Shown piece after piece: positions 12,024-48,941 of a DNA stretch of 64,000 nt. The notes beneath the pieces are model-generated. The model did no database searches and was not told the DNA's origin. It was given only the letters and a program-made list of their open reading frames with translations. The number at the start of each line of letters is the position of its first letter. Within the stretch, counting starts at the first letter, position 1. The translations under genes were made by a program, and so were the position numbers. This DNA is from Schmidtea polychroa. Its lineage: Eukaryota. The stretch covers positions 43,214,001 through 43,278,000 of the forward strand of contig CM097887.1 in assembly GCA_044892525.1 (NCBI GenBank). Direction: 5' to 3'.

Positions 12024-12283
12024 TCATTTGAACCAGGATTTGGAGCCTCGGAATGATGCTCTCCGAGACGACTCGGAGCCCCTATTACTTTTACTCACTC
12101 CACGGGAAGAAGATTCAGACCACTTTTTATTTCTTTCTGGACTCCTGTCTCTTTCCAGTGGTTTTAGGAGCATCGATTCACCTCCATCTTAACGGAAAAT
12201 ATACAATTTCTAATTCCAATCCAAATTTTTTCTACTTCTCGATATTCCTTTGGGATTACTGTTGTACAGGTCTCGAAACCCTC
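12024..12283 (-). CDS. Last two exons (12236-12283, 12024-12187) of TASOR-like gene A
   Basis: 48-bp GT-AG intron 12188-12235. The spliced frame reads GFRDLYNSNPKGISRNGGESMLLKPLERDRSPERNKKWSESSSRG...SKSWFK*. The terminal exon is 164 bp, the same length and phase as the gene B terminal exon, and both share GES.LLKP..R.R. Linkage to the DUF3715 exons is inferred from the collinear paralogy. Confidence 0.7.
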
Positions 12284-12413
12284 CTGAATACAATTTTTAT
12301 CAAAAAATAATTGCAACTTCAGAAATTGATTATTCTGGATTTACTTTAAAGTAATTTTTATATCAAAATGTCAGATTAGTACTGAGTAATATTTCAATCA
12401 AATCTATTATTAA

Positions 12414-13024
12414 CCCCTTTACCGTCAACTTCCTTTTCTGAAATCGACCCTTAATTGGCGACTTTATTTGCGACTATAAAAAAATTAATCTTTTAATTAT
12501 TTTTCAAACATCCTTATCAACAATAACGAACAACTAATAACGAATAACAGTTAACTAATTAATAACAAATAAAGCAGTTTTTAGTATTGTTGTAAAGTAA
12601 TGAGTAGTGGATAACAAGGTACTGAATAAGAAGAACAATTGTTTTGCAAGTTTTTGTGTCTTTTGCTCCAACCTTTTGTAAGAATTTTTTTGTATGACCT
12701 GAAATAGACACTAGAAGAGCATAATAATAGTTGTTGTGATGATTTAGCTTATAGCGATGGGGTAATACAGCTACATTGAGGTTTGAAACGTTTTCTGAGA
12801 TTTCATGGGAAATGTTTTTTGTATAATTTCTTATTTTGTTTAGCCCTGCCATACATTCTTGCCCTCAGCAGGGCTAGAGTTGTAGTAGAGTGCATGGTTA
12901 TTATGGTTTGATGTTTCTAAATGACCTAGAACGACGTATTTATGTTTAGCCGAGTATATTCGGGTCTACCGGTTATCAGCCGGTTTCGGCTTGACGAGTA
13001 TCCTCGGGTCTACCGGTAAAGGGG
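12414..13024 (-). mobile_element. piggyBac-type non-autonomous element, family PB-a copy 2 (611 bp, inverted)
   Basis: TTAA flanks; TIR CCCCTTTACCG; reverse complement of 4861-5471 with very few differences. Confidence 0.95.
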
Positions 13025-13141
13025 TTAATTAGCTGGTCTACCCGGCGTTGCGCTTGCACATAAGTCGTATAAGAGATTGCTATATTTTATTAAATGCACT
13101 TGAATTTTCAAAATTAATTATATATCGTCAACATTTATTAA

Positions 13142-13446
13142 CCTTTTGAGGACGACGGGCTCAAAATTTTTTATTCCCCAAAGGTGCAATTTTGCCATAA
13201 AAAATGAAGTTTTCCTAAATTGATTTTCAACACTCCACCTTACTGCAAATCGAGATACACTGACGATTATATGAAGAGTATTGAAGACGTATAATTAAAA
13301 ATATGGCTATTTTGACAACTATTACAAGCTGTAGAATATATTGGTGCAAATTAGAAGTTTTTGGCATTGAGTGGACTAGAGTCGAATTTCGCCCTCAAGA
13401 CCAAAATAAAGTTGTGCGACTGTAGTCGCACAGCGCCTTCAAAGGG
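13142..13446. mobile_element. piggyBac-type MITE (305 bp)
   Basis: TTAA flanks; imperfect TIR CCTTTTGAGG / CCCTTTGAAG. Confidence 0.65.
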
Positions 13447-13694
13447 TTAAGCATGTGAAAATTAAAAAATAAGGAACATGAACGACAGTAGGTTTTGATT
13501 AGGAAATCGAACACTGGAACTGAATGTGTCAATGTCGTAATTACTATTAAAAAATTCAAAATCTACCCAAAAAATTTATTAAATTCAAAATTTTGAGGTC
13601 AGTGTCATCATTTGGAGGACAGTTTAAGCCAAATTCTGAGGTCAGGGTTGATTTTAGGTCTTTCGAAGATCAAAGTCCAATTTTCGCAATTTAA

Positions 13695-13916
13695 ACCTTT
13701 AATGCACATGCCCGAACGTAACTCGGGTAAGTGTTACTGGCAAATTTGTGCATGCTCGAGAGAGACTCGGGTATACGAAATATAAAGTTTTGTTTAAGAT
13801 TCACTAGCGACTATATCTGGGGCTGTGTAATAAATTTATGAAAAAAAGCCGAGATGTGAATTTGTAGCGTAAAAATGATTTATTTTTGCCGTTGTATAAA
13901 AAAATACGTTAAAGGG
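13695..13916. mobile_element. piggyBac-type MITE (222 bp)
   Basis: TTAA flanks; TIR ACCTTTAATG / CCCTTTAACG. Confidence 0.6.
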
Positions 13917-14100
13917 TTAAAGGTCATAGAAATTTTTAAGGTCAACCCCCTAACCAACAATTTAAGGTCAAATTTAAATTTTTCTGATTTTTCCCTTACT
14001 TATAGCCCTTTAATACAAAGACATATGCAATATATATATACATTATAAGAACATTTTTTCCAATTTCACCACTGATTTTTTTCCATTGAATTTATTAAAA

Positions 14101-14175
14101 AAGAGCTTGAAGACTATAAATCAGTAATATATCGATGTTTTTGATATATTACTGACTTATAGTCTTCAAGCTCTT
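14101..14175. repeat. Near-perfect 75-nt hairpin (33-bp arms, 1 mismatch, 9-nt loop)
   Basis: aagagcttgaagactataaatcagtaatatatc-gatgttttt-gatatattactgacttatagtcttcaagctctt. Confidence 0.9.
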
Positions 14176-15417
14176 CTACATTTATATATATATATATATA
14201 TAGGGTTGCATGTGTATTACATGTGTATTTTTATTATTTTTAATAATATTTGGAAATTAATGTCGTCGAATAATATATGGAAAATATAAATTCAAAATTC
14301 AAATTGAAAAAGGAAAAACTAAGCAACACAAAAAAATCAACTAGAAGAAATAAGGAAATTAAAAGCTGTAAATTAAACAATCCAATTTTACAACTATCCT
14401 AAAACGCAGCAAATACAAGAAATAGTAAAAATTCTTAATATCCCCCTATATTATTACGAAAAGAGAAAAGCAAAGTTATCCACAGGTTCAAGAAATATCA
14501 AATCAACGAGATCAAGTGTTTATAGTTTAATCAAACATTATATTATTCGTTATCAAGCAATTCAGAACAATTAAAGGTTTTTTAGTTTATATTAAACGAA
14601 TAAAATAGTTTATAATTTAATCCTATTGTTGTTAATCCTTTTTATTGCATTCTTCACACAGGCACCCAAGCAGTCCCAAAACAGATTTTAAAGGATACTT
14701 CTGGGCTCTTACAATCTCTTAGTATACACCTACAACTGATTAAAACATATAAATATCAAAACATACAAATTTCGCAAGACCTCAAACCTATTCAATTTTA
14801 CGATCAAAATAAATTTGTATTAATTTCATATTTTTAAAATGTGTTAAAAATATTTTAATAGAACTCAATATTTATTATCTATATTTCGGTGAACAATGCC
14901 CATCGCCAGAATTCAATGTATTGATATAGCCTATTTTAGGTATTATTAAATTACAAAAATTTTAATTTTTCAAAAAAATAATCATAACAGAACAGCAAGC
15001 TGTCATTTCTCAATGTGATCAGAAAGGAATATGTAATAAAAAACATATGATTGGTATAAAAGTGTGATCTGTGAGAATAAACGAAATTTTACAGTACTCA
15101 AGTTGTTACACGGGAAAGGTTGACAGTTTTACCAAATAGGTCAACCAATAATTCTTATTAATGACGATATTTTAACACGATATTTCTCAAACTGTGTTCC
15201 CAAAATGTTTGAAAAAATAAAAGATTTCAAAGTTATTAGATTGTAAAACAGAAATAAGATTGACAACATTGACAACAAAATATGAAAAAGTTTATCAAAT
15301 AATATATCCAGATTCCAATGATAAAGTAAAGTAGTAATCCTGTTCAAATTTCTCGTTAGAAAATTTAATAAGCATTTGCTTTTATTTCTGACTTCCATTT
15401 TCTATGACATTTTAAAA

Positions 15418-16114
15418 CAGGGACTGAAACCGAACCCGAACCCTGTTGAACCCAGAAACTCATGCAGGTTCAAGTTCATAAATTTAATAAATTTATTCTG
15501 TGAATTTTTTAGAAAAAAAAGAGGACAAAAAAGTAGTAAAGTTTTCGTATTCGTTAATGTTGCCAAGCTTATTTTCTTAAAGTAGCTTACTACGATACAA
15601 AGTTTCTCGTGTTCATTAATGTTTCCTAACGATTTTGTTTTTATTATTTGGAATTTTGACTTTCTATGATTAAAGTTTAATAATAATCATTATTTAACCA
15701 TTTAATTTAAACGTGTTTTTTTGTTTGTTAAATTCTATATTAAATTTAATTTTAAAATTGTTTTGAGGAAAATAAAGTAAGTACATAAACATACTTAAAA
15801 GAAAAAAGTATTTTAAAATTTTGGGAGCAACGTAAAATACAAACACCTTTACTATATCAGTGGCCTAAATAATATTTGCAGTCCCTGTTAAGCAAGTTAG
15901 GGCTTTTTCAGTTTTAAAATGTATACTATCACCTCAACGAGCAAATCTAACAGAAGAGAACTTAAAAAATATTTTAACTGTTTAATTAAATGAAAGATTT
16001 TTGGGAAAATAAATAAAAGATAGTGCTTTTTTTCTAAATTTTAAACCCGATTTTTTTATTTTAATTAACCCGAACCTGAACCTGAACCCAATTTTTTCCG
16101 GGTTTCTGTCCCTG
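15418..16114 (+). mobile_element. hAT deletion derivative
   Basis: TIR CAGGGAC(T/A)GAAACC; AACCCG subterminal repeats; TSD ttttaaaa/ttataata; decayed dimerisation domain IFAVPV...RAFSVLKCILSPQRANLTEENL at ~15870-15990. Confidence 0.8.
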
Positions 16115-16431
16115 TTATAATAATATGTAATTTTTTTTTAATTTAACATTTTCGCTTTTTTAAATTACAAAGTTATTTTGCTAAAAAATGTTACATCGAA
16201 ATTACAAATAAAATATTGAAAAATTATAGATATTTTAAATAATTTCAATTTTATCAGAGAATTTCGCACTAAGAATCAAAAATTTTAAATTTATTTTAAA
16301 AACAGATTCAAGTTACTCTTATTATCTTAATATTTTATGGCCTATTTCAAATATAATATTTTTGGTCATCAGTATTTTGATTAAGTTGATTATAATTAAG
16401 AAAAATGAAAAAATAAAAAAGTATATTTTAC

Positions 16432-16548
16432 CATCATTCGGATAGTTTGGACCATAATTAATGGTTCTCCATGAATCGTCTACTGATGTCGGTTTTTCAA
16501 TATCATATAGTTCTTTATTTATTTCAGGTGCAATCACCTTTCGAGAAT
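16432..16548 (-). CDS. Internal exon of TASOR-like gene A
   Basis: AG/GT bounded, 117 bp, phase 1-1: DSRKVIAPEINKELYDIEKPTSVDDSWRTINYGPNYPNDG. Paralogous to gene B exon 40156-40236 (W..INYG). Confidence 0.7.
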
Positions 16549-17051
16549 CTGGAAATATGTATTGTAACAATTAGCTTAGTAATGCCATTTCCCTCTAATT
16601 TCATTCAATATTTCTTAGAAAAGCTAAAAATATATTTAACGTGTAGAAAACTGTTTCTTGTCACTGCAAAATAATTTGTTAAAATTTTATTTTCACCGCC
16701 AAATTTCTTTTGTTAACCAAACAAACACAGAAACATATTCAAATTTTAAAATACAACTGGTTCAAATAATTTTGTTCGTAATTCTTTTCAAAATTTTTCA
16801 ATAATTCAAAATTTCTATCTATCAATAAATTGGAAAAGTGTTCCACTTTGGCATTTGAACTTGTCTCCAAAAATTTTGAAACGAACTCAAACCGATAATG
16901 AAAATTCTTGAAACCACTTAACAGAATTAGTTAATACTATCATAATTTTCGCCATATAAGACGTTCTTTTCTATTTAAAAAATGTCTTATAAGTCGAATG
17001 CTTCTTATAAGCCGACGAAAATGGAAAATATACAATAACATTTACAAAATA

Positions 17052-17908
17052 CAGTCGATTCCGCTTAACACAAGATTTACGGAACCTGTCAATTTGACGG
17101 ATTCAATTTTTAAAATTAAATATACAAAAGAAATATCATTTTTTCCAATTTTTTTTATGTTGATTATTAATGACACAATGATACGCGAATATATCACTAT
17201 CCTTTTCTTTGTCGCCATTTTCGCTTAGGGGAAATGTGTTGTATATATCTATTTTTACGGACACCCGTCAAATTGTCTTCTAATGTCAGTAAATCTAGTG
17301 TTAATTAGGACACCTCTATATTGGGACAGCCGCTTAATTGTGGCAGTACATCAATACACCTAGAATTTTCAACATTAGATAACAATTTACCATGTTACGA
17401 TGATAATGAAGACTGAGGATTCAATTGTAGAAGGCATTAAATCAAAACATGAAAAATTAGACGAAGAAAAATTAGACATGTGCCTGTGACTAACCAGGAG
17501 GCAAAAAAATGTATGGCCGTGTTACAGCGTTATTTTATGCAGGAAGAAAATGAAGGGAGCCCTACATCCGCACTGAATATCTGTGCTGATTATGTACAAG
17601 TGAAATGTTACAAAAACAAAAGACAGGCTACACTTGACTCATTTTTGCATTGAATTAAATTGTATGTACCTACCCATTTATTATTTTAATTAGAAAATTT
17701 TTTTTCTTAAGTTTTTTTGTAATTTATATGATAATTTATATTACCTATATGTAATTTACAGTTTCTAAGAGTTTATAAAATAAAATTATTGAAAAAAATA
17801 TGCATTGTTTAATTTTATGTGTGTATCAATAAATTTTAAATGTGAAATTCGCTTAATTAGGACAAAATGCCCAAGTCCCGATGTGTCCCAATTAAGCGGA
17901 ATCGACTG
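17052..17908 (+). mobile_element. Tigger/pogo internal-deletion derivative (857 bp)
   Basis: TA TSD; TIR CAGTCGATTCCGCTTAA; C-terminal remnant NQEAKKCMAVLQRYF...KRQATLDSFLH*. Confidence 0.88.
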
Positions 17909-20900
17909 TACAACAAAATATATCAGACAATTAAAGTCTATTACTTTCCTAACATATTAGAAATAAAGACAAATTTGTCTAATATGAAAATTCACTTAAT
18001 ATCAAGTTTTTACGGAGCACTGGCAAAATAACCACCTAATATACACAAAATAGAATGCCTCATAATAGCAAAATTTGCTTTACAGCATAAACTTCTCAAT
18101 GACCAATATGTAGGCATGTGTGCTGGCAAAATCTACATGTATTTTTACCCTCCATTTCCACTTACCGCCTTACACACAAAGTACGCTATGGATCGGCATG
18201 CTCACAATCCCTGTATTCATATTAGGTGGCTTCAATAGGTTACCATTAACACGTTACCAGCCAAAATGTTGAGAAAAAATTGTCCTCCTGGGCCAATTCG
18301 GTTGTTCGGCTAATATTACATTCATGGCAGTCCACGTGGTTAAATATAATGGGGTAAGTAAAACATGGCACAAGTGTCTCGCGGCTCAAACGCACGAAAA
18401 TCTGAGACACAAAATACATGTCTCATGACAACTAACTTGTTAACTAGACTTTATTAAAATCACCCAAATGTAACATTGGGTGTCTGATTGAGTGTATTCA
18501 AACGATTGACACTGGCTCCTTATTGATATGATTACAAAATGACTAATTGACTGTTAGAAAAAATTACTGTAAATCAATTATCTGATACTTTGAGATTACG
18601 AACTTCTAGGGGTAAATTGGCCTAATAACAAGTTTTTCTGACATTTTCTTACTTGCTAATAAAGCAAATTCTATTTTATATTATAATTTAACAACAAAAC
18701 ACATAAGTGGTTTTCGACATTTTTTGACTAATTCGATCAATCATTTTCACTTAATTTGACAAAAATTATTTATTGAGAATTTTTAATTACAATCCAGCTT
18801 CTGATAATAAATCAAATTTCTAAACTTCGGAATTATTTCAAAAACAAATACAAGAGGAAACATTACACTAATTTTCACAAGAAATAAATTATTGAATACA
18901 AATATTAAACAATTCTTTGAATGATTCTATTTATTTTCTCAGTCAATCTTGTTTCTGGTTAAATCATTATATGCATCCTTGTAAATTAAACAACTACTCA
19001 TTGTTTTCTGCATCTTTCAAATTTTCGAAATAAAAATCAGAACTAGTACATTCTGACTTTGAAACTTATTTTTCATTTTTCGTGGATATTACGAAAAATA
19101 ATTACTTATTACCCGAGTTTCCTAAACTTTTTGATTTGCCTACAGAGTCGTACTAATAGGCCTAACAACCCTCGTATAGTGGGGTTCCAAATTTAGAAAG
19201 CTGCAACTGTTCACATCATGCAGATGAGATATGTATTAAGTATTGAACGAGACTAAATTCGACAATTAAACACTCAGTGTGTTGTGGTGGAGTTCATCGT
19301 GAAAAGATTAGGAGAAAACGCGTTTTGCAATAACTTCAGGTTTTTTCCACAGAATATTTTAAGTAATTAATAAAAAGGGACCGCTATAAATTTTTGATAG
19401 CGATATTCCAAAAATTGTTGGAAAATCAATAGTTTTCAGAAGAGTATAAAATGTTTCCTCGTTTTAACTAATTAAAATCAAAGTCTTAACCTATTTAAAT
19501 AATAGGTATGTGTAAGCCCAGAAATTTTTGCAATATTCTTTTCTGAATGCGAAAAGAAATCGAGAAATTTAATGTTTGAAAATGTATTGGAACGGAATTA
19601 TTTTTAAGAATTGCAAATTCGTTTCCAATCTAGAAAGACGTTTAACACAGTTCAATGTACTAAATTCGTTGTGCTCTTATTGTAAAAATTACCACTTGTA
19701 TGCTCATTTTAAATATCACTTTTCGTTCTTAAATATAGTTTTAAGGATAATTTGACCCAATAAGAACAGTTCAGTCGATTTCCGCGCCATCTCCATTTCC
19801 ACAATACCGCTTCATTCCATATCATTTTTAAATATTAATTCGCCCATTGGTTGCTTTACAGATTTCGAATTTTAAGTTTGTTTCATACTTCATTTACAAA
19901 TCTATTCCTTTTCATCCGCTTTTTTATTTTCCCTCGATTCTTATGATCGACTGATGGTGTAAATATTATAATATGTTACTTCGCTGCAACATTCTTTCGA
20001 GTCTTATCATTTTGAATTTCTTGATTAACTTTCTTGATTTCCTTTTTAAGAGCAAAGTTTTATATCTTTTACATTTTTTACATTTCATTGTTTGATTGTA
20101 ATTTTTATTGGGATCAAATCGGTGAGATACATTTTCTAAGTTTTAATTTTAAAATACATCGAATTATCAAATTATCGAATTGGTTTGAACCCTAATAGTA
20201 ATTGAATTATATGCTTAAATAGAAATAACTGGGTTCGACTATAATATCATTTCTTTTATGATAATAATGATACTAAGATGCCCTAATTAATCGGCAAAAT
20301 TGTGAAATGTTATTCGAATTCTTTTTCGTAAAGTTTCATGATAATTTTGAGAGATCATTTAAATGTCTTCATTATCTAATTTAATATATTTTAGAACATT
20401 TGAATAATCGAAAACAATTTCTCCCTGTATCAATTCAATAAACTCAATGAGAAATAACTGGCTATCCACTTATTATTAACAAATGACAAATTAATAAAAT
20501 TTAGAACTGTTCTAATTAATTATTTTATTCACCAGTAGTTACAGTTATTCTTTTAGTAAATATTGTCGAAGTTCAAAATCTAATTTTGATCCTGAATAAA
20601 AATTCTTAAATTGTATTGGAACTCCCCTTAATTTCAATCAAGGTCAATTAATAATGGTAGAGCATATCATTAATAACATGTTGACGACAGTGAAATTTTA
20701 CCTTTTTGATTTAACAAAATTAATTCACCATAAATTGTGAATTTTTAGCGTAAGATTGAATATTTTTGAAAATAATTTGGTATTTACTATTAGTGTGAAA
20801 TATAAAAAAAACAGCTTCTTTCATTTAACGTCACCTAAGTCATAGTCATTTACGATATTATCTGTTCCTTTTCTGCACAACTTATAGAGTTGTAAAATTT

Positions 20901-21385
20901 AAGTCAGTATATTCCTCGAAATTATATTCAAAATTTTTAAGTATCATTTTTTTCAAATTTTCAAATGACGTTCTTTGTAATGGTTAAAAATATCGAAAAT
21001 TAACAAATAACATGTTAGGGTTTGTTGTTTAATTTGTGTTTTTCTACCACTTTCTGTATTATAAATGATGATTTAAATTTAGAAAAAACATCAACACGCG
21101 AGTTGTGTATGCTCGTATACTATAAGCTTATTGTTTTTCTTATATTTTGAGTGACATCCATTAAAACTAGGTATTGAACTGTCTGTGTTTTATATTATAC
21201 AACAATATGGAAAGGTTTTACAAACCCTTTCAATGCGCAAATCTAGTACAAGCGCAAAACGGTGATATAAATATATGCGGGAAGCCCACATATGCCTATT
21301 CTTTACGTATGTATTTTCAAATAAACAGTAATATATAATCATAATTATTAAATATGTTCCTGGACATATGAACATTATCCTTTAA

Positions 21386-21504
21386 CCTCTTAAGTGGTTT
21401 ATTTCGTAAAACGGTCCTACTGGTTGGAACGCGAAAATGTTTTGATTTAAATTGAATGGGGTTTTTTTGACGAGCGTCTGTAAACGGTTTTAGTTGTTAA
21501 AGGG
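21386..21504. mobile_element. Possible short TTAA/piggyBac-type MITE
   Basis: ttaa-CCTCTTAA...TTAAAGGG-ttat; degenerate. Confidence 0.35.
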
Positions 21505-23130
21505 TTATATATCAAAAAATTTTAAAATGTGAACTATGTTTCAATCCTCTTATTTGAATGATATATATATATATATATAAAATGATTACCAACAAGCCAG
21601 AATCAGAGGTTAAAAAAGAAATTTCTTAGAACAAAAAGAATTTTGTTTATTCAATTTTCTTTGTCGTAGTAACACCAGAGTTGTGAAAAACTGTCGAAAT
21701 CATGATTTTACCGATCGAATATCAAAATGTGATAAATTTCTTTAGTTTGTAATAAACCAACAATGTAGCGGTCAATCTAGCAGATGAATTCTCCATCTTT
21801 ATCAACTGTGAAAATGGGGTAAATGAATTCAGAAGATGTCTCACATAAGTTTAATATGACGATAGAGAAGATCTACCACTTGAAATTGTTAAATTTAGTT
21901 TAGGAGAGCGAAGGATACCATACACAGCTTCCAGATTCGGTGTTGGCTTTAATTGTGCTTTAATTGTGTTTATTATTCGTGCCTCATCTCCTCCCTGGTG
22001 AAGTGGTGGAAAAGGCTCGCATCACCTGTGAAAACAACATCGACATCTTGAAGGAGCATAGAGACAAGTTATTGTGTAATATTCACACAGAAGATGAAAT
22101 TCCACTTAGTGCATAAATCACGGAGTCCAATAATGATTCTGATTAGTGAAAATTACCTGTTGAGAAACTGTCAGTCGATATGATATCAGGGACTTATCAT
22201 CGCCCGATACTCATGCTTTTCATCTTCTGAGGCGCAAAGGCGTTCTGCAGATGGATCTTACTGACTAGTCAGTTAAGATTAATGCCGAGTACTACAGTAA
22301 CATTGTGACTACAGCCAGAAAGAAGAGAAGACAGGCAAAGCTTCTCCATGAATCATACATAGAAAAATACTGTTTATCCGTGTTAAAACAAAAAACTCCT
22401 ATTGTTTTTTTATTTCCATTTTAGACCAGGAATTTATTGAACATACCACGTATGTGTAAGAAATAAATTCCACATTAACCAGAAATTCTTGCAATGATAT
22501 TCTCCTTTTTACCTTTGGATCCAAGTCAATAAATTTGATAACTTAAAACTAAATCTTATCTTCTATATTTTGGATAAGATCTCTATTGGTATTTGTAATT
22601 TTCTAACAGTACTTGTTTCGTTTCCGGTAATCAAAATTTTGTCATATTAACAGCTTGTTATAAAATTTATTCCAAAGTTGATGGGTAGTCATGTCGCGTA
22701 ATAATCATTATCAATGAAACATCCCTGTAGATACAGAACTTGTAAAATTTCTGTAAAATGTCATGGTGGGAAACAATAAAACAAGTGCCAATTCATATTG
22801 TTAAGTTCATATTTCCAATATTTTTAATATAACAGTGATCAAAGTATATCCAATATATAACTATTAAAAATATATAATTATGGTTCATATTTCCATTTTA
22901 CAGTAAAAATTTATTCAACATCATTGTGATTACATGAATTGCGGTAATAAAATGATTTCTCTTAACAATTAATTGTAATAAGCAAATAATATTCTGGCTT
23001 AATATTTGCCGAAAAAATAACAGAAATTAACATAATTTTGTCATTTAGAACAGTCAGTTTTGATGTCTCCTGTGTTCTTTAAATAATTAATTACTTAAAT
23101 AATTGTGTTTGAATTTTAAGTCCATTTATA

Positions 23131-24172
23131 TAAGGGAGTATTGATATATAGTTGGCCTACATGTTTTCGAAGTAATCCCCTTTCATTTGTATATATTTAA
23201 TGTATCGATCGAAATGAAATTCTTATTAGGAAAGAATATTGTTATTCAGTTCTATAAAACACGAATCTACAGCATCGTTTACCATCTCGTTTGTCTTAAA
23301 TTTCCATCATTTCAATGATATTGTATGTGCCGGACAGAGATAATAATCAGATAGAGCAAAATAAGGAGAATATAACGTATTGTCGAAAATCTCAAAGCCG
23401 ACTTCATTGATTTTTTGGTAGGACAAATTTGACCCGAAGTTTGGTTACAATGAAGGCGTAATATTCTTCAGTAATCGAATTTCCATTCTCCAAGTAACCT
23501 GCGAAAACTATGCCATCCATATTCCAGAAAAGGAAAGCAAACATTTTTCTACATACGAAATTTTGGAGTCGGAGAACCAGCATCTTTGTATTCTATTGAT
23601 TTTTCTTTAATTTCATCCATCGTAATTAGGTTATCCAAAAAGTTTGATTTTCTATCATTAAATTGAGTATTAATCATTGTCACTCGAATTTTGTCATTAT
23701 TGAGATATTTGTGTATCTATTTTCTCATTTCCAATTCAACCTGAACTATATAGAAAACGCGTTCATATGAAATATTCAGAGTCTCTAATATGTATTTTAG
23801 GACGACTTATCTATTATCCAAGATCTTACATCATAGATAGCATCAATGTTTTCAATGATCTCTTCTAGATCATATTATTTTTCCTTCCACATTTAAGATC
23901 AACAACCAAGCTTTTATTGGGTTGAATAGGATATGATGGCCATTGATATCCTAATAATGTTAGCAGGTAGTCCTTTCAAATATGTTACTTAATGACTGAA
24001 CAATATTTGATTTAGCAAAAGTTCCCAATTTTTAATCACAATTTTAAAATGACAACCATTTCTGCTAAAAAAACCTAGCACGTGTGAATGTTAAAACTTA
24101 CTTCCATAGAAACGCTATTTAATTTTGTTTGCTTGAAATTATCGAGGCCAACTATTTATCAATAACTCCTTA
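23131..24172 (-). mobile_element. Decayed mariner transposon
   Basis: 28-bp TIR TAAGG(GAG/AGT)TATTGATA(T/A)ATAGTTGGCCT with TA flanks. Minus-strand remnants FLDNLITMDE, FWNMDGIVFAGYLE and LYSPYFALSDYY match the mariner YSPDLAPSDY motif. Confidence 0.85.
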
Positions 24173-38627: not shown

Positions 38628-39508
38628 CCTTCCTAAGACCAGGTGGGATAATAGCATCATATTTTTTTGAAAATTTCTGCTAAATCTAGAACCTACCGCA
38701 ATCAACCACTAGTTATTCCCAAGGTGATCATTTATAGGACATCGACACCAACGCGAAAGATCGATCAAAATAACAAAAAAACGTGTTTTTAACAATTAAA
38801 ATGAAACATAAAAATTTATGTAAAAAAGTAAGTATTAAAAAATAACAAATATCTAACATTGACAAGATATCCATTTTCGTTTTCCATTGCTACAATCTCG
38901 TTATCTCCATTTCTCACGAGACGATGAATATTAATACAGATGTATTAATATCCATAAACAAAGAAAACATCAACAATTAATATTAAAATACAAATTTATG
39001 TGACTATGTTTAACTGGATCTATCCGGAATCGACGGGGAAATGACAATCGGCTATGCCCTAATCATTTAATAGTACTTTGCATCAATTTATCACAAAAAA
39101 GAATCTTGTTCGCATTTATTGCAAAGAATCTGCACGCGGTACAAATTTACACAAAGTTGGTTATTCACGCCATAATATAAACCGCATCATTTGCGCATAC
39201 TCGTGAATAAGATCACAAATGTCGAAAATTATGTAATAAATGTTCAGAATTTGTGTGTATAGAACATTCCACTAGCATTATAATATGTAAAACTTGTGAT
39301 AAGAAATGTGTTACTATATATAAGAAATATTAATTTTGTAAACACTTGTTTCTGTATTATGTTTGTATTTTATAGAATATATTTTCTTTTTATACATTAA
39401 AATTATTAAAAACCTTTAAACTAGCAATAGCACAGTGAAAAAGTATTGGGGTACAAATTTACCTCAAGTGGTCTCCCATGTAAGAAATTTGAACCGGTCT
39501 TAGGAAGG
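38628..39508 (+). mobile_element. piggyBac internal-deletion derivative (881 bp)
   Basis: TTAA flanks; TIR CCTTCCTAAGACC; C-terminal Cys-rich domain remnant DHKCRKLCNKCSEFVCIEHSTSIIICKTC at ~39210-39300. Confidence 0.92.
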
Positions 39509-39865
39509 TTAAAAAGTGAAATTTGTTTCGAAAATAGATTGTATTTCAAACAATGCCGAACCTTTCATTTATTATATAATTGCGACAATCATAAATAAGA
39601 ATTTCGTTTCCAATCACAAGAACAAGCTCTATAGTGTTGTTATTCATTTACAAAATCATACTAGATCCAATTCAATAGGAGGAGTGAAATCAAAAAAAGT
39701 TTCATTAGAGGAAATGATAAAGTATTCACTATTAATGTTGCATTTATGGAAATATTTCAATTATTAAATGAAGGAAATTAAATGACTTTATTAAAATTAC
39801 TTTTATTATAACAGCATATTTTTTATAGTTCTAAAAATATATAAGAAAGTTAATTTCAAAATTGA

Positions 39866-40031
39866 NNNNNNNNNNNNNNNNNNNNNNNNNNNNNNNNNNN
39901 NNNNNNNNNNNNNNNNNNNNNNNNNNNNNNNNNNNNNNNNNNNNNNNNNNNNNNNNNNNNNNNNNNNNNNNNNNNNNNNNNNNNNNNNNNNNNNNNNNNN
40001 NNNNNNNNNNNNNNNNNNNNNNNNNNNNNNN
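39866..40031. other. Assembly gap (166 N) inside gene B
   Basis: Run of N. Confidence 0.99.
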
Positions 40032-40155
40032 ATCATGATTCAGTGTCAATTACTTTAAAATTGATTTTAATGTTCCACCAGTAACTTTTTTTACATTAAT
40101 ATTTACTAAGCAGTAAATATTAATTAGAACAGGTAATAGATAATCATAAACTCAC

Positions 40156-40236
40156 CAGATTGATTAAAAGCGTCCCCATAATTTATTGGCTTCCACTGGT
40201 CAGATTCCGATATTTTCTGGAGGAAATTTGATGAAT
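40156..40236 (-). CDS. Internal exon of TASOR-like gene B
   Basis: atgttag|...|gtgagt, 81 bp, phase 1-1: DSSNFLQKISESDQWKPINYGDAFNQSG; paralogue of 16432-16548. Confidence 0.7.
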
Positions 40237-40861
40237 CTAACATAAAAATAAATCATGTCCCAGTTTTATATTTATTGTAGGACAACAGAAAACTATGTTG
40301 CATTTTATCTTTACAAAAAAAAACAATCGACCACGGTGTCGAAGCTACAGAGAGCCACAATTATCCAAATATGGCCCCAACTTACAATTTATATTTTTTT
40401 GAATATTCGTTTGCTCAGTCCAAAAGAAAGAATATTATATTCTAGCTTCCTATAATCAATTCGACCCTAAAATTGACCTTTAACTATTACTTAATTTTCT
40501 GCTAAAATTCAATACTGGAAAAGAATGCTGAAATATTGTTACAAAAACACATAAAATTAGATGTCGTACCTCAACACCAAAAAAAATTCAATATTATGAC
40601 TAAGTGAACCTTTGAGAGTTAATGAATAAACAAAAGGGAATTATAATTTATCCGCTTTAGAAAACATTCCAAACAGATCAAACAATGCAATCCAATATTG
40701 AATACAAATGCAGACGTCTTAGAAATCTTTTAAAACAAACCATATGATATAAAGATTAAGCTTTATATTGTTGACACTTTGCCTACCCAGTGCATCATAC
40801 GTGACACACAATCACTGGAAATAGATAATCGAACAATACTTGGACAGACAAAGGGTTAAAG

Positions 40862-41692
40862 CAGTGCTCTTCAACCTTTCGCAGTCGTCGGAACCCTTCC
40901 AAAAACTTTCGCAGTCGTCGGAACCCTTCCAATAAAAATTTCCCCATGTATATGTGGGCATGTATATATGTATTCAATTGGGGTTGTCGATGTGGTAATT
41001 TATAAAAAAATAATGCACTTTATAATATAAAATTATTTTATTTAAATAATTAATGGCAAAAATATAAAGTTTAACATAAAAAAAATAGAAATTTGATATT
41101 AAATGGTACTCAATGACTAGGTTGAGCCTGTTTTTTGCTACAAATTACATTGAAATCTGGTACAATTCTTGTAATTTGTAGCCTCATTTCATTTTCAGCA
41201 TCTAATTTATTTCTGTATTTTGTTTTTGTGGCAATATATAGCGAGAAAGATCTTTCACACATATAAGTGGTCACAAATGGCATCAAAATTTTAATAGCTT
41301 TTTTTGCGAGGTCAGGAAATTGGCAAAACATTTCAAGCCTATGATTATTCCTATGATTATAAATTTATTTTTAGAAACTATATTCAAATTTCAAAGGATT
41401 ATATATTGAAATTTAAAGAAAAAATCGAATTATTCTCAAATATTTTTGATAATTTATACTTTTCTTACATTTTTAGTAAATAAAAAAAATTTCAATGTCA
41501 TTGTAGCATTTCATAAATTTTCAAGGCGTAAAATTTTACAACAGAAAATTTTCAATGTATAAAATATAAATTATTATATGTTTATTTATATTGAAAACTT
41601 TTTTTATAAGAAATCATAAAATTTGTTCGCGGAACCCATAATTTTTTATACGGAACCCAAGGGTTCCGCGGAACCCAGGTTGAAGAACACTG
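40862..41692 (-). mobile_element. hAT/Buster deletion derivative (831 bp)
   Basis: TIR CAGTG(C/T)TCTTCAACCT; perfect TSD GGTTAAAG (central TA); C-terminal transposase ORF 41110..41331 with PFVTTYMCERSFS...KTKYRNKLD...KQAQPSH. Confidence 0.95.
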
Positions 41693-43539
41693 GGTTAAAG
41701 GAATGATGAGTTAAAAGTTGACCTGGAAAAGGATTAAGGACCGATTGCAGAGGAAATTAAGAATTCAATACAGCTTCAGTTTAGGCCAAAAATCAACATA
41801 TATATTATATAATTAAAAAAAATAAAAAAATTTATTATCCATTAATCGAAACTCTTCTCTCACTTAATACATATTGAGCAGCAAAGGTTTAACTTGTCAT
41901 TTACTTATTTAAAATTATTATATAGCAACATGCCGATATGCCTAAGTTACAAACCAACATTCTCATGATAACTGTTATTATAAATTGTGTCAATACATCA
42001 CATAATTTTTCACTGTCTAAAACTAAAACGGGCTAAAGAACTTATTTTGATTTTCAACTCTGATTTCTTTTTACTTTCAATTGACATTATTTATTGACAT
42101 ATTTATTAAAAATTAATTATGAATCAGTAAAGATATTGAAGTTTTTTTGATATCTTCATCGATTTATAGTAAATTTTTTAATATTATTTTTCGTAGGTAA
42201 AGATTTTCTCCAAATGACGGTATAATGTGATTGAATTTTTTTCATCAAGATTCAAATAGTACTTATATACTCGGAAGAACTACTATTAGGAGGAAAACGG
42301 TATTGATTCCGAAGGCTTTCGAAAATAACTTGATAAGAAATGTGCTTTACAGACAAAGGTAATTTGAATAAAAGCTCCATGAACTACAAATAACCAACTA
42401 AAAGTAAAATCAGATTTCGAGAAAATTGTAGAGTTGAATCTCGACGAGGGCAGTCTTAACACGTTTGCAAATTTCAAAATAAAATTTAGTTAGATCATAC
42501 TAGACACCTTAATTTCTATCAAGCGATTTAGATTACAGCACTGACTAATATTGTTAACAGTATTTCATTTTTAAGAATTATGCTTTTGATTTTAAAATTT
42601 AAACTTTAGTATTAGTAATCGCTTTCATGAAATAAAAATAAAATTTACTTTTTGTTTCCTTGATTGATTTGTTTTGATTGTATATTGTAGTTGGTTTTAA
42701 GTTTCCTATTATTATTATTTAGAAAAATATTAAATATATGGACAAAGAAAGTGTATTATTAAAAATAACTATGAAAAAAAACTAAAATATATAAAGAAGA
42801 TCCAAAAACAAAATTTATCGATTAACAAAACTATTTTGAAGTCTACTAATTATCGAAATTTTTAAAACTTATAATATTTGATAGGAAATATTTAAAACAT
42901 TACCATTTCATGAGCTGAAAGAAAATTAGCAATTATATGGAACTTTACCACAGTAAAATCAATGCTATTTTAAACGTATCCCCCAATTTATGACACTATA
43001 TAGTAACGAACAAAAGGAAGATTGTACTTTTACACTTGATGAACTTAAAAGTAAATATTCGCACGCGAATTCAGGAACATATCCGATTGAAAGGCTTGAA
43101 TTATATAGTTGAGCATGGGAAAATGTATAAAGATGTAACTGACTTAAAATCTTTGAAAATTTTATATGAAAACTTTAATAATAAATGGGAAAGAATTTTA
43201 TGTGAGGAATTGGTTATTATGCGGGGCCCAAAACAGCAAATGATAAGTGAGGCCCATTCCCATGGCAGCAGACGAGGAGCGAGACCCATGCAAAAATTTG
43301 CATTTCTACGTAAAATAATGAAAAATTAAAAATTAAATTACTTAAATTTTTACTCTATAACAGCGTTGACACATCAATAATTACAGTTATATTCATTTAA
43401 CTGAAGATCATAAAACTAAAAAAAAATTAAGTTAAAATGTTTTGTTTTGGCATGCTAATTGACAGTTCATATATAACTCTACATTATAAACTATATACAC
43501 TATAGCGTTGGTTTGGTTGTATCTTTACTTCCACCTTGT

Positions 43540-43770
43540 TTTTACAACTCACAAGCAAATTTTGCGAGTTTTGACGACTGCAAAATCTGAAATAAGTTCA
43601 TTATTGTCAAGATCCTTAGCAAGATCCTTCTCAATAGACAAAATAGCTAAGTTACTGAGCCGATCTTGAATCATTGTTGATCGCATAAAGGTTTTAATAA
43701 GTTTTAGTTTCGTAAACCTTCTTTCTCCGGAACCAACAGTGACAAGAATAGTTAGAAGTATGTTTAGTCA
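43540..43770 (-). pseudogene. hAT (ZMYM1-like) transposase C-terminal remnant
   Basis: LLTILVTVGSGERRFTKLKLIKTFMRSTMIQDRLSNLAILSIEKDLA...ELISDFA. Confidence 0.8.
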
Positions 43771-43874
43771 AAACACGTTTATATAGGTTCATGAGGCGTT
43801 AGTCAGTATCGCATTTTATTGTTAGTATGTATTGAGTAATTGTGTATGTGTTGAGTCCCTGTATATATTTTGCA

Positions 43875-44420
43875 TAGTGTTTCTTAACCCTTTTCAAAGC
43901 CCGCGCCCCTTCGAATTTTATAGTGATTTAGCACCCCAAATTTGTTGGGGATCCCAGGTTTAAATTAAACGCCATATCAAAAATTTAAATGAATTCTAAT
44001 ACTTTTTTTCTACATTTGAAAGTGAATAATTACAATTCAAAATATACAAAATTTAATGTGAAATTTTTTGTTATTTTTTCTAATAATTTCTTGGTAGCGA
44101 GGAAATTTTTGAAAGCGCATGTTATCACTCGCATTTAGTCGATTTCTATTTTATTTTTAACATTTCCTAAAACTGAAAATCCTGCTTCGCAGAGGTAGGT
44201 AGTAGCGAATAGAACAAGTAACTCCAACGCAATCTTATCAAGACTCTAGTTGCGTACACCAAAAATTTGCAAGAGTTGACTTTTCAAAAAACATAGCATC
44301 ACGTGCTCTACTTTGAAGTTCAATGAGATCATCTTGCAGTAAATCTTCATTATCAATGTCATTAATATTGAAAAGAAATGGATCCATCTCCGATCCATAC
44401 TCATTTTCCGTCGAAAAATA
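43875..44420 (-). mobile_element. hAT/Buster 3' remnant
   Basis: ALELLVLFATTYLCEAGFS...KNKNRNRLNAS...QKISH*; terminal TAGTGTTTCTTAACC. Confidence 0.75.
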
Positions 44421-45136
44421 ACTATCAAATGATTTTTAATTTCTGAACAGATAGTAGATTTCGAAATAGTGCGGCACAACAAAATGTCACAATACCTACT
44501 TCAATTTGACTGTTTCGCCCCCCCCAGAAATCTTATCCCGCGCCATTAGTGGTGCATGCGCCCCTGGTTTAATTATTTATTGTATGCATGATCAGTAAAG
44601 GAAAAGCCTACAGTAATTGGTTAGATGTGGACACTAGAGAAGATATTTGTTAGAATATGACTGATAAAATGATTATGGAATCCATTTGCCGTTACGAAGA
44701 TTTTCAAGAAGAAACCGAAGAAAGTGCCAGTGGGATAACTGATATACCGCTGACAACAAAAGAAGCAATAGCAACCATGGAAACTGTTATAAAATGAGCT
44801 GAATCAAAAGAAAATATTAGCAGTGACAGATACAGAAGTTATAAAAAAGCGAACCAACAAAATTATTTACTTTTTTTAAGCGTGATTGAGTAATTGAAAT
44901 GATGCAGAATACAGATATTTTAGTCAAGTTATAGACAGTGTTTATTTTTACATATATGTACTTATTAAGATGTATGTGAATTTCTATAATTATTTAGGTA
45001 TCCTCATCATACACCAGGCTTAACACGAATAGATTCTGCTAGATCACCAAGTCAAGCGAAAATAACAAACGCATAGAAATAGGAGTCTCGTCTCATCAGT
45101 TCGGGCGAATATTACCATTCCGTGTTAATCGAGGGA

Positions 45137-45140
<4 letters not shown>

Positions 45141-45212
<72 letters not shown>
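45141..45212. repeat. (TA)n microsatellite
   Basis: About 72-bp perfect TA run abutting the element at 45213. Confidence 0.98.
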
Positions 45213-45214
<2 letters not shown>

Positions 45215-45980
45215 ATTTCCCAGAGAAAAGTAAATTTTTACCAATTAAAAGTAAATTTTTCCCAAATAAAAGTAAATTTTTCCCATTTAAAAGTAAATTT
45301 TTCACAATTAAAAGTAAATTTTAAATTGCAACCATAAATAACAAAAATTAATTTAAAATTTAAAAAAATATTGAAAATGTGTTTTAATATTATGTTCTGT
45401 TAAAATATGTTTACCGCCAAAATAGCATAGGAATAAAGTTTTTAAAACCATAATGGAAGAAGAAAATTTAACAGACAGACATGATTCATTTATCATTTTC
45501 TCTCACCATATTCCTACATGATTAATCCGATTGAATCCGCTTTTTCGAAAATAAAAATGTATTGTGCATGGAATGTTAAGTACAGAAAATGTTGGAAATC
45601 TATCTCAAATGATTACTAATGCATCAACACAAGTGACTTCTGATGATGCACCAGGATTTTTTAGGCTAATGTCTAGAAATATAACAAATGCAGCTGCAGG
45701 TTTGCCTTACCATCATGTGTAAATAAAATTTAATGCTTACTTATGAACCTTGTAATAATATTTGTTTAATTATATTTACTTGTTATAATAAATAATTTTT
45801 GTTTAAATTACTATACTTTTAAATGGGAAAAATTTACTTTTAAAAGGGAAAAATTTACTTTTAAATGGGAAAAATTTACTTTTAAAAGGGAAAAATTTAC
45901 TTTTAAATGGGAAAAATTTACTTTTAAATGAGAAAAATTTACTTTTAATTGGGAAAAATTTACTTTTCTCTGGGAAATGA
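45213..45980 (+). mobile_element. IS630/Tc1-type deletion derivative with long TIRs built of 21-bp tandem repeats
   Basis: Termini CCATTTCCCAGAG...CTCTGGGAAATGA in (TA)n; about 5 left and 7 right copies of AAAAGTAAATTTTTCCCATTT; internal SPYSYMINPIESAFSKIK motif (DDE_3 catalytic E region). Confidence 0.85.
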
Positions 45981-46135
45981 TATATATATATATAATAAAA
46001 TTAATAATTATTTTTATTTAAATTAAAGATATTTTGATAGCATGGGAAAATTGGAAATGCTAATAAGCAGTGTGAGACAAATAACAATTTAATTGTTTTT
46101 TAAATATAGAAAGTCTTTTACATAATTTAATAGAG

Positions 46136-46456
46136 CAGGGGTGCCCATTAGGTCGATCGCGAAGGATTTTTTAGTAGATCTTCATAAAAAAAATATTTTT
46201 TATATAAATTTAGATTTTATATAAAATTTCTGTTTTATGCTTAAATATTTTGCCAATTTTCATGTTCTGTGTTCCATTTCTATGGTAATACTAAATAACA
46301 TTTTTTAATTTTGATTTCACCATTTCCAAAATGTTATTTAGTTTAATTTAATTTTGTTTATTTAGTTTAAATATTATGTAAGTATTAAAAAAGTAGATCG
46401 CATACACATTTTGGATGTGAATGTAGCTCTCCTAGAAAAATTAGTGGGCACCCCTG
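46136..46456. mobile_element. hAT/Buster MITE (321 bp)
   Basis: TIR CAGGGGTGCCCA; perfect TSD TAATAGAG. Confidence 0.93.
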
Positions 46457-47111
46457 TAATAGAGTAACTAGATTTGAATTCAGAATTCATTTTGTCCTAG
46501 ATTATTGATTGAAAATATTGGAATTTTATAAAAATATCATTGTCTAAATCCTTATTGTGTTCTGATTAAGTGATTCGACAGTCATTGATAGGCATCTATA
46601 ATAAACGTGTGTTTGATATTCTTATCGAGCTTGTATGTATGTGAACTTTGCCAAAGTGCTCCATAAACACCCCAAGTGTCACTAGCGCTCAATAGGAAAT
46701 CTCAGCATACAGACTATTGGCGATGAAGAGAGAAAATCCAGATCAGCAGTATCATGTATTATTTTGATGCTTCTCGGTAATTAAATTGGATGTATGACAA
46801 TGCATATTTCCCTGTCATTTATTCTTAATAATTTGAACTTGTCACAGTAATAATAATAATACGAGGCTCGTGTTAATTACTTTCCACGGAACACAGTTTG
46901 GAAAATGCTGCATTAATGATAATAAATGTGGAAAGCGGTGGGATACAAACAGGGCATTTCCAAAAAAGGGAATAGATGGATTAACAATGTCCTTTTTAAC
47001 AACGTAAGTCCTCAGTGTTAATATAATGACTCATCTATAAGAGATTCAATGGGTAAAGTAATATGGGAAACATTTTAAAGCAATTATTACATAGAATTTA
47101 TATATCAATAC

Positions 47112-48941
47112 CTTCATTATTATATTTTGAATACGATTCATTCCAGGGAGGTTTTGGTAGACGAGGATTTTTTGAATTTGACATAAATGAATTTTTAGTG
47201 TGAAAAGGTGTATCCAATGATTCAGATTCAGTCAAATCTAATATTTCCGATGGTGCCAAACTTTCAAAAATCAAGGCTCCTATCGGAACACAGTGTTTAG
47301 GTCGAATAACGGGATCGTAAAGATCGTCGGAAAATTCATAGAGATAGACCTATGTTTATGTTAACAAAAAATATTTCAATGTAAAAAAGAGAAATACTAG
47401 TGATTTAATGTATTGTATAGCATGTTTTTCATTGGGAATAGGACGTTCTTCACAGACATGGGAATCGAAGTTCGGAGTAGGCGCTAGAAGAACTTTCGGA
47501 TCATACATGGGAACCATCTTTCTTTTACCGAGCATATACTGTCAACAAATACAATTTAACCGACCATTACTCGAATTTTAATTCATTTCGAATTATTAAC
47601 CAATCAGAATGAATAGCAAATCAGAATTATTAAAACTAGTAAATGTTTCTAACGAAGTACCATTTTTCGTTTCACTAATTCATCTACCCTATTATATACA
47701 ACCACATTCGTATTAAACAAATAATGCAAAGGATTTATGATTTCTTTTGTGATGCATCATTACATTGCTATTGTAGGACTTCAATATGACTTTAAAACTG
47801 AGATTATTTGAGTTTCGTATACAAATTTTGTGTCCTTTAGGTTTTGGTCAATGGGACTAACGAATGAAACACCTATGAAATAATGACGTTGCAGTAACGG
47901 ATTGGATAAATATACTCTTAACAAAAACAATTCAAAGTTGCATTTAAATCCTTCTATTAAAAAGCTATTTATATATAAAATTTATATTTATACTGTTACG
48001 CATTTATCAATCATATTGATCACATTAACAAAAAATAACCATGGGGAATATAATTCTAAATGGCTAAATTCCTAACTGGAACTCTTTGCTGATATTGGAG
48101 TAAAAAACACATAGGGTGTAATCAGGTAATAAACACTCGTTAAATTGAAATTACTTTAAAGATAGTATTAATATTAATTAAGTGAATAGACAAACTATCA
48201 TATCTATTTATAATATGTTACATATCCTTAATATAACCCTATATTGAAACAGAAAGAAGTACAATGCCGCCATTTTACTTTATGCATGTTAGACATACAA
48301 CTTCGACTACGTGTTTTTATGTCACGACTATATTTCTGTAGGTTTTTTATCTAAATTCAATACATTTCCCTCGCGAAATCACTTTAAACATTTTTCAAAA
48401 TAATTCCTAATTTACTTTGAAAACTATTAGAGTAATTTCTTCTGAATTGAATTTATTGCGAGCTTCGTTTAAACATACATCGGCATTCATGCTGATATGG
48501 ACTCCGGAAGTACAATGGCCTAGATAGTTATATGGACGCATTTTAATCTCCAATCCTTCTTCGGCTAATTTGTCTATTAATCCATTATTATTCGTTGCGA
48601 GAAATCCGAATCGAACATCCCAATTGTCGGAATAATACGCTCGTTCTCTAATTTCATCCCGCTTTTCTGTGAAGATAATTGTTTAACTATATAATTTTTT
48701 TTAATTAAAACCATTGAATTCTCGTTCGAAACTTTTATTTTGGATGATAAAAGCATTTTTTAAATTCCACGAGTCCTCTATATGTACAGAATGATTTAGA
48801 TTTGTAGAACTTATGTTTTCAATTAATTCATAAGTTTCATTACTTTCTATAGGAATTTCATCAACATGATCTATAAGAAGAATTAGAAAATTTTAAGTTT
48901 TCACAATTACTTACAAGGTTTAATATCTTGGAGATTTAACG
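47112..48941 (-). CDS. TASOR: TASOR-like gene B, exons encoding a DUF3715 (pseudo-PARP) domain; exons 48915-48941, 48712-48870, 48416-48666, 47398-47538, 47112-47349
   Basis: GT-AG introns in the same positions and phases as gene A (159- and 141-bp exons identical in length). Open spliced frame ...AFIIQNKSFEREFNEKRDEI...RFGFLAT...EGLEI...YLGHCTSGVHISMNAD...LIVFKYMLGKRK...APTPNFDSHV...VYLYEF...RPKHCVPIGALIF. About 59% aa identity to gene A in the largest exon (50/85, hand count). Start codon not located. Confidence 0.88.

Follow-up and report, generated by a model that had tools for sequence, protein, structure and literature searches.

The stretch of DNA analysed here, referred to below as the window, comprises 64,000 nt of the genome of Schmidtea polychroa with a G+C content of 29%, and contains two genes, designated B (48948-36699) and A (30278-12024), which form a tandem head-to-tail pair on the minus strand and have seven exons each. 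Each of the two encoded proteins is predicted to consist of an N-terminal DUF3715 (RDTS) domain, a PARP fold without catalytic activity that is known from TASOR and TEX15, followed by a short tail. A translated self-comparison of the window revealed six collinear paralogous blocks between the B locus (~48.9-36.7 kb) and the A locus (~30.3-12.0 kb). Splice sites were placed by reading the sequence around each paralogous block, and the exons were then joined unaltered. In gene B, exons of 34, 159, 251, 141, 238, 81 and 164 bp join into an unbroken ATG-to-stop open reading frame (ORF) of 1068 nt, encoding 355 amino acids (aa) plus the stop. In gene A, exons of 37, 159, 254, 141, 265, 117 and 164 bp join into an equally unbroken frame of 1137 nt, encoding 378 aa plus the stop. 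All 12 introns of the two genes are bounded by GT and AG, and the intron phases (1, 1, 0, 0, 1, 1) are the same in both. Introns 1, 2 and 4 are mini-introns of 41-66 nt, while introns 3, 5 and 6 measure between 0.9 and 8.1 kb, so that exons spanning 34 to 265 bp are scattered over 12 kb (B) and 18 kb (A) of transposon-rich, AT-rich sequence.

Gene B (36699-48948) is the upstream copy and is predicted to encode a DUF3715-only protein. Its first exon (48915-48948, 34 bp) supplies the ATG and ends in phase 1 at a GTAAGT donor; with 3 of 12 residues shared with the first exon of A, it is the least certain of the seven. Exon 2 (48712-48870, 159 bp) has the same length and phase as its counterpart in A, to which it is 44% identical (E 4e-16). 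The core exon, exon 3 (48416-48666, 251 bp), carries the first half of DUF3715 and shares 59% identity with A exon 3, and exon 4 (47398-47538, 141 bp) is 77% identical to A exon 4 (E 2e-26). The end of DUF3715 (LYEF...RPKHCVP), together with the start of the tail, is found in exon 5 (47112-47349, 238 bp), where the motif YE[YF]...RP[RK]H.CP is conserved. Taken together, exons 4 and 5 align to residues 147-222 of the Macrostomum protein PAA83647.1. Exon 6 (40156-40236, 81 bp) runs from phase 1 to phase 1 between AG and GT bounds, carries a W..INYG motif and is collinear with A exon 6 (E 0.001). Exon 7 (36699-36862, 164 bp including the stop) carries a GES.LLKP..R.R motif and agrees with A exon 7 in both length and entry phase.

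The downstream copy, gene A (12024-30278), likewise encodes a predicted DUF3715-only protein. Its ATG lies in exon 1 (30242-30278, 37 bp), which ends at a GTAAGT donor and was placed by sequence reading and by the ORF join. Exon 2 (30031-30189, 159 bp), exon 4 (25004-25144, 141 bp), exon 5 (24673-24937, 265 bp) and exon 7 (12024-12187, 164 bp including the stop) are each supported by a paralogous block and by the ORF join. Exon 5 contains the end of DUF3715 (LYEF...RPRHCCP) and the start of the tail, while exon 7 has the GES.LLKP..R.R motif and a Ser/Arg/Lys-rich end. Exon 3 (29736-29989, 254 bp) is the DUF3715 core exon, both of its boundaries falling within one residue of those of a Lingula exon (aa 55-140). 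Exon 6 (16432-16548, 117 bp), which runs from phase 1 to phase 1 and bears the W..INYG motif, is supported by a paralogous block, by sequence reading and by the ORF join. A different arrangement was also considered, in which B exon 6 would be spliced to A exon 2 (both junctions being in phase 1) to give a single gene with two DUF3715 domains. It was rejected, given that each copy has its own ATG exon and a homologous last exon bearing the stop.

The only assembly gap in the window, an N run at 39866-40031, lies inside intron 6 of gene B and starts 124 nt after the exon 6 donor. On the upstream flank all frames are closed within 0-6 codons of the N run and no AG occurs in the open stretches, so that an exon cannot reach into the gap from there; downstream of the N run, the frames close after 2-19 codons. 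Since the end of B exon 6 and the start of B exon 7 are both in phase 1, just as in gene A, which has no gap, the contents of the N run have no bearing on the reading frame of B. An exon may lie wholly within the gap, yet there is no counterpart for one in gene A.

Comparison of the spliced proteins has revealed 47.8% identity over 314 aa (E ~1e-92), which is far beyond chance; for the core exon the value is 59.0%, and for the 141-bp exon it is 77%. The ratio of nonsynonymous to synonymous divergence (dN/dS) between A and B, calculated by the NG86 method, is 0.19 overall and 0.16 in exon 4. By the same method the synonymous sites are saturated, with a proportion of synonymous differences (pS) of 0.70-0.87 and a dS that is at least 2 or not computable. 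At the DNA level the two genes align over just 268 bp around exons 4 and 5, with 73% identity, and their introns are unalignable. Both copies have been retained under purifying selection. In a neighbour-joining tree of the domain, which sampled seven sequences (A, B, two Macrostomum proteins, the sequence of an environmental/run-assembly contig termed L001, the Lingula protein and one environmental sequence) and had TASOR and TEX15 outside the sample, A and B are sisters with 99% bootstrap. The duplication therefore arose within their own lineage and, as dS is saturated, it is old. These results bear out much of a preliminary description of the locus, which had proposed two same-strand genes of matching exon architecture with open spliced frames, identical phases and equal exons of 159, 141 and 164 bp. 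Its figure of about 59% identity in the core exon and its report of W..INYG and GES.LLKP..R.R motifs in both genes have likewise been reproduced. The same applies to its view of an old, lineage-specific duplication in which both copies have stayed intact; a dN/dS near 1 had been named there as contrary evidence, and about 0.19 was found. Overall, the structure, homology, intactness and constraint of the two genes can be accepted with high confidence.

The identity of the domain was approached by applying Pfam (PF12509, cut-off 28.5 bits) exon by exon and by comparing the spliced proteins with relatives that themselves match Pfam. Taken singly, exons 2, 4, 5 and 7 gave no Pfam match. A profile of the two core exons was run against 1.84 billion representative proteins and recovered 13 of them (best score 65 bits), while none of the 1.84 billion was more than 50% identical to the core exon. 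All ten of the core-exon relatives that were scanned match Pfam DUF3715, nine above the cut-off and one just below it, with the full-length ones scoring 62-75 bits. Three full-length relatives have proved informative: PAA83647.1 of Macrostomum lignano (P0002; A0A267GDX0), a protein of 488 aa that is named in UniProt as a 'TASOR pseudo-PARP domain-containing protein' and matches DUF3715 at 75 bits across profile positions 1-150; a second M. lignano protein of 241 aa (P0003); and the 622-aa product of LOC106162540 from Lingula anatina (P0013; XP_013395306.1). In blastp comparisons with PAA83647.1, B gave E 7e-47 with 35% identity over 211 aa and A gave E 2e-45 with 37% over 204 aa, the matches covering the whole DUF3715 span of the Macrostomum protein. 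Against XP_013395306.1 the spliced proteins gave E values of 1e-22 to 1e-28 and 30-35% identity. With a flatworm (Macrostomum) and a brachiopod (Lingula) as the sources of the nearest relatives, a spiralian origin is probable from the sequence itself, and the 29% G+C and the 41-66-nt mini-introns agree with it. A hidden Markov model built from the relatives alone gave scores of 138 bits for A and 121 bits for B over residues ~50-235, and 0 of 400 shuffled sequences reached E <=10.

Comparisons with solved structures point in the same direction. PAA83647.1 matches a single one, the human TASOR pseudo-PARP domain (6TL1, E 1e-13), and a profile of the relatives together with the window exon pieces also finds 6TL1 as its sole match in the PDB (E 3e-26), with no ZAP, RCD1 or active PARP at E <=1. 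An AlphaFold2 model of PAA83647.1, made from a shallow alignment, has a mean pLDDT of 43; a fold search with this low-confidence model ranks 6TL1 first, followed by PARP10, PARP14 and RCD1, which may be taken as weak support for a PARP-like fold. Word-indexed protein searches with residues 1-240 of PAA83647.1 and with the family alignment recovered only the query itself. The assignment to the DUF3715 pseudo-PARP family made in the preliminary description is thus upheld by Pfam-positive relatives at 62-75 bits, by matches of the spliced proteins to such relatives at E 1e-45 to 1e-47 and by 6TL1 as the sole match in the PDB.

The positions that characterize TASOR as an inactive PARP have also been compared, with TASOR numbering taken from the crystal construct (residues 110-332 with 261-269 deleted; PMC7532188) and from a profile alignment to 6TL1. 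In TASOR, L184 occupies the position of the PARP histidine, which is 'restored' in the L184H mutant (PMC7532188). Both window proteins align a Leu at this position (GFLAT), as in TASOR itself. TASOR also has an extended beta8-beta9 loop (Y303-H316), which is unique to it among human PARPs and is needed for silencing (PMC7532188). This extended loop is kept in A and B as LYEF...RP[RK]H and has 16 residues, compared to 14 in TASOR and 5 in annotated human PARPs. By alignment only, the position of TASOR Y305 is taken by an aromatic Phe in both proteins and the RP[RK]H.CP motif is conserved. In these respects A and B look like TASOR-type dead PARPs, and the change at one key residue suggests that catalysis has probably been lost.

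Beyond DUF3715, both proteins continue for 127-150 aa as a low-complexity tail that is basic (isoelectric point 8.8) and has few hydrophobic residues; in A it ends in a Ser/Arg/Lys-rich stretch. The conserved content of this tail amounts to two short motifs, W..INYG and GES.LLKP..R.R. No Pfam match to a SPOC domain was obtained in exons 5 and 7, though the SPOC domain of TASOR is hard to detect by sequence. DomI, DomII and PIN were not encountered in either protein, both of which end 127-150 aa past DUF3715. Pfam likewise gave no TEX15 domain in the post-domain exons 5 and 7, and the proteins are too short for one. From this lack of SPOC, DomI, DomII, PIN and TEX15 domains it follows that A and B are DUF3715-only proteins and not scaffolds of the TASOR type. 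A short form is also found in their relatives, since the tails of Macrostomum PAA83647.1 and Lingula XP_013395306.1 are low-complexity as well. An unrelated convergent gene adjoins the Lingula gene 1 kb downstream, which indicates that its short form is not a fragmented gene model. Neither W..INYG nor GES.LLKP is present in contig L001.

Part of the exon structure is shared with these relatives. In the Lingula anatina gene, the exons encoding aa 55-140 and ~141-188 correspond within one residue to exons 3 (84-85 aa) and 4 (47 aa) of the window genes, and the phase-0 intron that follows '..FK' in the window genes recurs in contig L001. In the Macrostomum gene, the counterparts of exons 3 and 4 are fused. 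Both introns flanking the DUF3715 core exon are thus found in the window genes and in Lingula (L003, 10001-15111), only the one after the core exon in L001 (590-1191), and that same intron has been lost in Macrostomum (L002, 12109-12507). Intron loss and retention around the core exon might be of use as a phylogenetic marker in this family.

The two genes are surrounded and interrupted by repetitive DNA. The 6.4-kb spacer between them holds an apparently complete hAT DNA transposon (30504-33549, minus strand). The element is part of neither gene and stops 226 bp short of the ATG of A, on the upstream side of that gene. Its ORF of 643 aa is intact, has the same orientation as the genes and encodes zf-BED and hAT dimerisation domains. 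The terminal inverted repeats of the element are perfect, as is its 8-bp target-site duplication, and the insertion is probably recent. The possibility that this ORF is an exon of A or B was rejected, as it is a hAT transposase enclosed by the inverted repeats and the target-site duplication. The closest database relatives of the transposase are at most 51% identical, the named ones including sequences from insects and a frog, and an exact look-up of the intact ORF in public protein sets gave no record. Considering both this result and the lack of any match above 50% identity to the core exon, it seems that the public protein sets searched do not include this genome, or at any rate not these genes. 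The short and scattered exons, together with the absence of a >50% identical protein among the 1.84 billion, further indicate that A and B are probably unannotated or fragmented in public data.

Within the introns, a mariner-type DDE fragment occurs in intron 5 of A (23407-23592, minus strand) and two hAT-dimerisation fragments occur in intron 5 of B (41113-41364 and 43552-43767, both on the minus strand). Intron 5 of B also contains, at 45140-45967, an (AT)36 run and a 21-bp unit that is repeated in two oppositely oriented arrays (45226-45322 and 45814-45967); the arrangement resembles the subterminal repeats of a non-autonomous element. A repeat family of ~620-680 bp is present in three copies (4857-5482, 12401-13028 and 54111-54789), two of them 99.8% identical and the third ~90%; one copy sits in intron 6 of gene A. 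Farther from the genes, two inverted repeat segments (9856-10498 and 58650-59369) are 91-92% identical and include one open piece with a weak, sub-threshold Med21 match. At 61814-63783 (minus strand) there are remains of a pol gene of long terminal repeat (LTR) retrotransposon type, with reverse transcriptase, RNase H and integrase core; they are split into at least three separate open pieces by at least two interruptions, and the element may run off the window. A 402-aa open frame at 6106-7314 (plus strand) has only weak, below-cut-off matches to RAMP and TarH and may be repeat-derived, a short stretch of it recurring at 13465-13575. Rfam and tRNA scans of the window were empty, and Pfam scans showed no MPP8-, Periphilin- or SETDB1-like gene within it.

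Regarding function, DUF3715 has been studied in two characterised proteins, TASOR and TEX15, both of which act in RNA-directed transposon silencing, and their DUF3715 domains can replace each other in LINE-1 silencing (PMC10578480). Because both characterised members silence transposons and their domains are interchangeable, a role as a silencing module is proposed for A and B. According to this proposal, the pseudo-PARP domain would lack ribosylation activity and, like its counterparts in TASOR and TEX15, would act as an interaction or effector module, an adaptor in RNA-directed silencing of transposons in the nucleus. Docking onto the partners that the additional domains of TASOR recruit in vertebrates would be the task of the tail motifs, and the two copies could be specialised by tissue, stage or target. 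Taken as a whole, the reading of A and B as a pair of stand-alone pseudo-PARPs forming a silencing module is favoured with moderate confidence. The transposon-silencing role in itself, for which domain homology is the sole basis, is put forward more tentatively. A bolder version, in which a minimal RDTS protein made of a pseudo-PARP and two docking motifs would suffice for RNA-directed transposon silencing without a TASOR or TEX15 scaffold, with two specialised copies (for example stem cell/soma versus germline, or two element classes), appears rather doubtful. If true, such a minimal pair would represent the simplest natural system in which to find the binding partner of DUF3715.

Several observations weigh against the favoured reading. 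Tested against Pfam DUF3715 by itself, the core exon stays below threshold, with 18.2 bits in B (E 0.0026) and 14.6 bits in A, covering profile positions 15-79 of 150. Among the residues of the catalytic triad, the histidine is the sole position that the alignment maps with confidence, and the position of TASOR Y217 is a His in both window proteins (GVHIS). Concerning the gene models, the least certain parts are exon 1 and the direct joins of exons 5, 6 and 7, for which phase, splice signals and conservation between the paralogues are the only support, and additional non-conserved exons may be present in the 3.3-8.1 kb introns or in the N gap. The assembly functions of TASOR reside in SPOC, DomI and PIN, none of which is found here. 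Finally, other pseudo-PARPs, such as ZAP and RCD1, serve unrelated roles.

The alternative that has survived best is that A and B are stand-alone pseudo-PARPs with a job unrelated to silencing, either as an RNA-binding or antiviral cofactor like ZAP/PARP13 or as a transcription-factor hub like plant RCD1. Every TASOR domain that mediates HUSH assembly is absent from both proteins, and the fold search on the Macrostomum model returns PARP10, PARP14 and RCD1 in addition to TASOR. Moreover, the molecular function of DUF3715 is not known even in TASOR and TEX15 (PMC10578480). Against this alternative, TASOR is the sole solved relative that can be reached by sequence (E 3e-26), and ZAP, RCD1 and active PARPs are all missing at E <=1. 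The TASOR-specific beta8-beta9 loop and the RPRH.CP motif have been retained, and both characterised DUF3715 proteins work in RNA-directed transposon silencing. A role of this unrelated kind is accordingly considered unlikely, while deserving to be kept in mind.

It is improbable that A and B are true TASOR-type scaffolds (DUF3715-SPOC-DomI or similar) whose remaining exons have been missed in the long introns or the gap, or are too divergent to be recognized. Introns 3, 5 and 6 are indeed long, one of them holds the N gap, and TASOR-like proteins with SPOC and DomI do occur in invertebrates. Nonetheless, both seven-exon joins are complete and end in homologous 164-bp stop exons with matched phases. 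A scan of the introns for pairs of exons of equal length and equal phase gave exon 6 as its top match and nothing past it. The intronic open pieces examined were the mariner remnant, the two hAT remnants or sequences matching no family. A tblastn search with the C-terminal halves of the relatives gave no match in the window. At 488 and 622 aa the closest relatives are short proteins as well, their tails are low-complexity, and the Lingula gene is bounded by an unrelated one.

Even less credence can be given to the idea that A, B or both are pseudogenes, intact in appearance yet unexpressed. In favour of it, gene A has an apparently young hAT element 226 bp upstream of its start, and the introns are crowded with transposon remnants. 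However, neither copy shows a single stop or frameshift over its seven exons even though synonymous divergence is saturated, splice sites and phases have been retained in both, and dN/dS is 0.19. The notion that A and B are active mono-ADP-ribosyltransferases is highly improbable: the PARP-like fold, a pocket unlike that of TASOR (owing to the His at the Y217 position) and a glutamate position outside the residues mapped would be compatible with it, whereas inactive TASOR and the two window proteins alike have Leu at the position of the catalytic, NAD-binding histidine, and sequence comparison reaches no active PARP at E <=1. An assembly artefact as the source of the second copy, whether through haplotype collapse or duplication or through faulty joining at the gap within gene B, is a practically negligible possibility, and the preliminary description had already judged it unlikely at this divergence: the copies share just 48% of their residues, their introns are unalignable, no more than 268 bp of their DNA is still similar (73%), and the gap is intronic with the seven B exons in order on both its sides.

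The pair of stand-alone pseudo-PARPs can thus be set beside the DUF3715 proteins already described. With the human TASOR pseudo-PARP (6TL1), the sole solved structure reached by sequence, they share the Leu at the PARP histidine position and the extended beta8-beta9 loop with YE[YF] and RP[RK]H.CP. They differ from human TASOR in their length of 355 and 378 aa, with just a short low-complexity tail after the domain, in having Phe for Y305 and His for Y217, and in a loop that is two residues longer. The nearest named relatives are Macrostomum PAA83647.1 and Lingula XP_013395306.1, with 35-37% and 30-35% identity, respectively, across the whole domain, and in these proteins an N-terminal DUF3715 is likewise followed by a low-complexity tail. 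Their tails are unrelated in sequence, however, being Ser/Ala/Gln/Pro-rich in Macrostomum and Tyr/Gly/Asn-rich in Lingula and lacking W..INYG and GES.LLKP. In contrast to the tandem arrangement of A and B, the Macrostomum gene has no second called gene nearer than 10 kb, and the neighbours of the Lingula gene bear no relation to it.

The label of TASOR-like scaffolds, which had been applied in the preliminary description, does not suit A and B in its published sense. As used by Schopp et al. (2023; PMC10578480), 'TASOR-like' refers to proteins with DUF3715, SPOC and DomI. An N-terminal DUF3715 in a non-vertebrate animal is common to these invertebrate proteins and to A and B, but the defining SPOC-DomI part is missing in the latter, which end 127-150 aa past the domain with no further conserved exons. 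The suggestion that such proteins have been studied mainly in vertebrates, and that the system is undescribed, was also overstated, given that DUF3715 and TASOR-like proteins were reported throughout Metazoa in 2023 (PMC10578480) and cnidarian DUF3715-only proteins in 2026, the latter termed 'truncated Tex15 homologs' (bioRxiv 10.64898/2026.09.07.749791). As in A and B, DUF3715 is the sole recognisable domain of the cnidarian proteins. These belong to another phylum and were placed in the TEX15 branch by means of branch-specific profiles, and no tandem pair has been reported for them. A survey of the literature on TASOR in planarians and other flatworms gave nothing relevant among the top results. 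Since DUF3715 proteins, including DUF3715-only forms, have already been published across Metazoa, A and B extend a known animal-wide family and do not constitute a new kind of system.

The interest of the pair lies in the domain itself. DUF3715/RDTS is essential in HUSH and in piRNA-directed silencing, while what it does at the molecular level is still not known. Two constrained copies of a nearly bare domain show that DUF3715 is used outside the large vertebrate scaffolds, and A and B could be suited to structural and interaction studies of it. The closest parallel to the pair as such is found in vertebrate TASOR and TASOR2 (HUSH and HUSH2), where two diverged DUF3715 paralogues have also been retained in one genome. 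These two are large scaffolds encoded at separate loci, for which distinct targets have been demonstrated (PMC11532391). The duplication that gave rise to A and B, which are each other's sisters, is independent of the vertebrate one.

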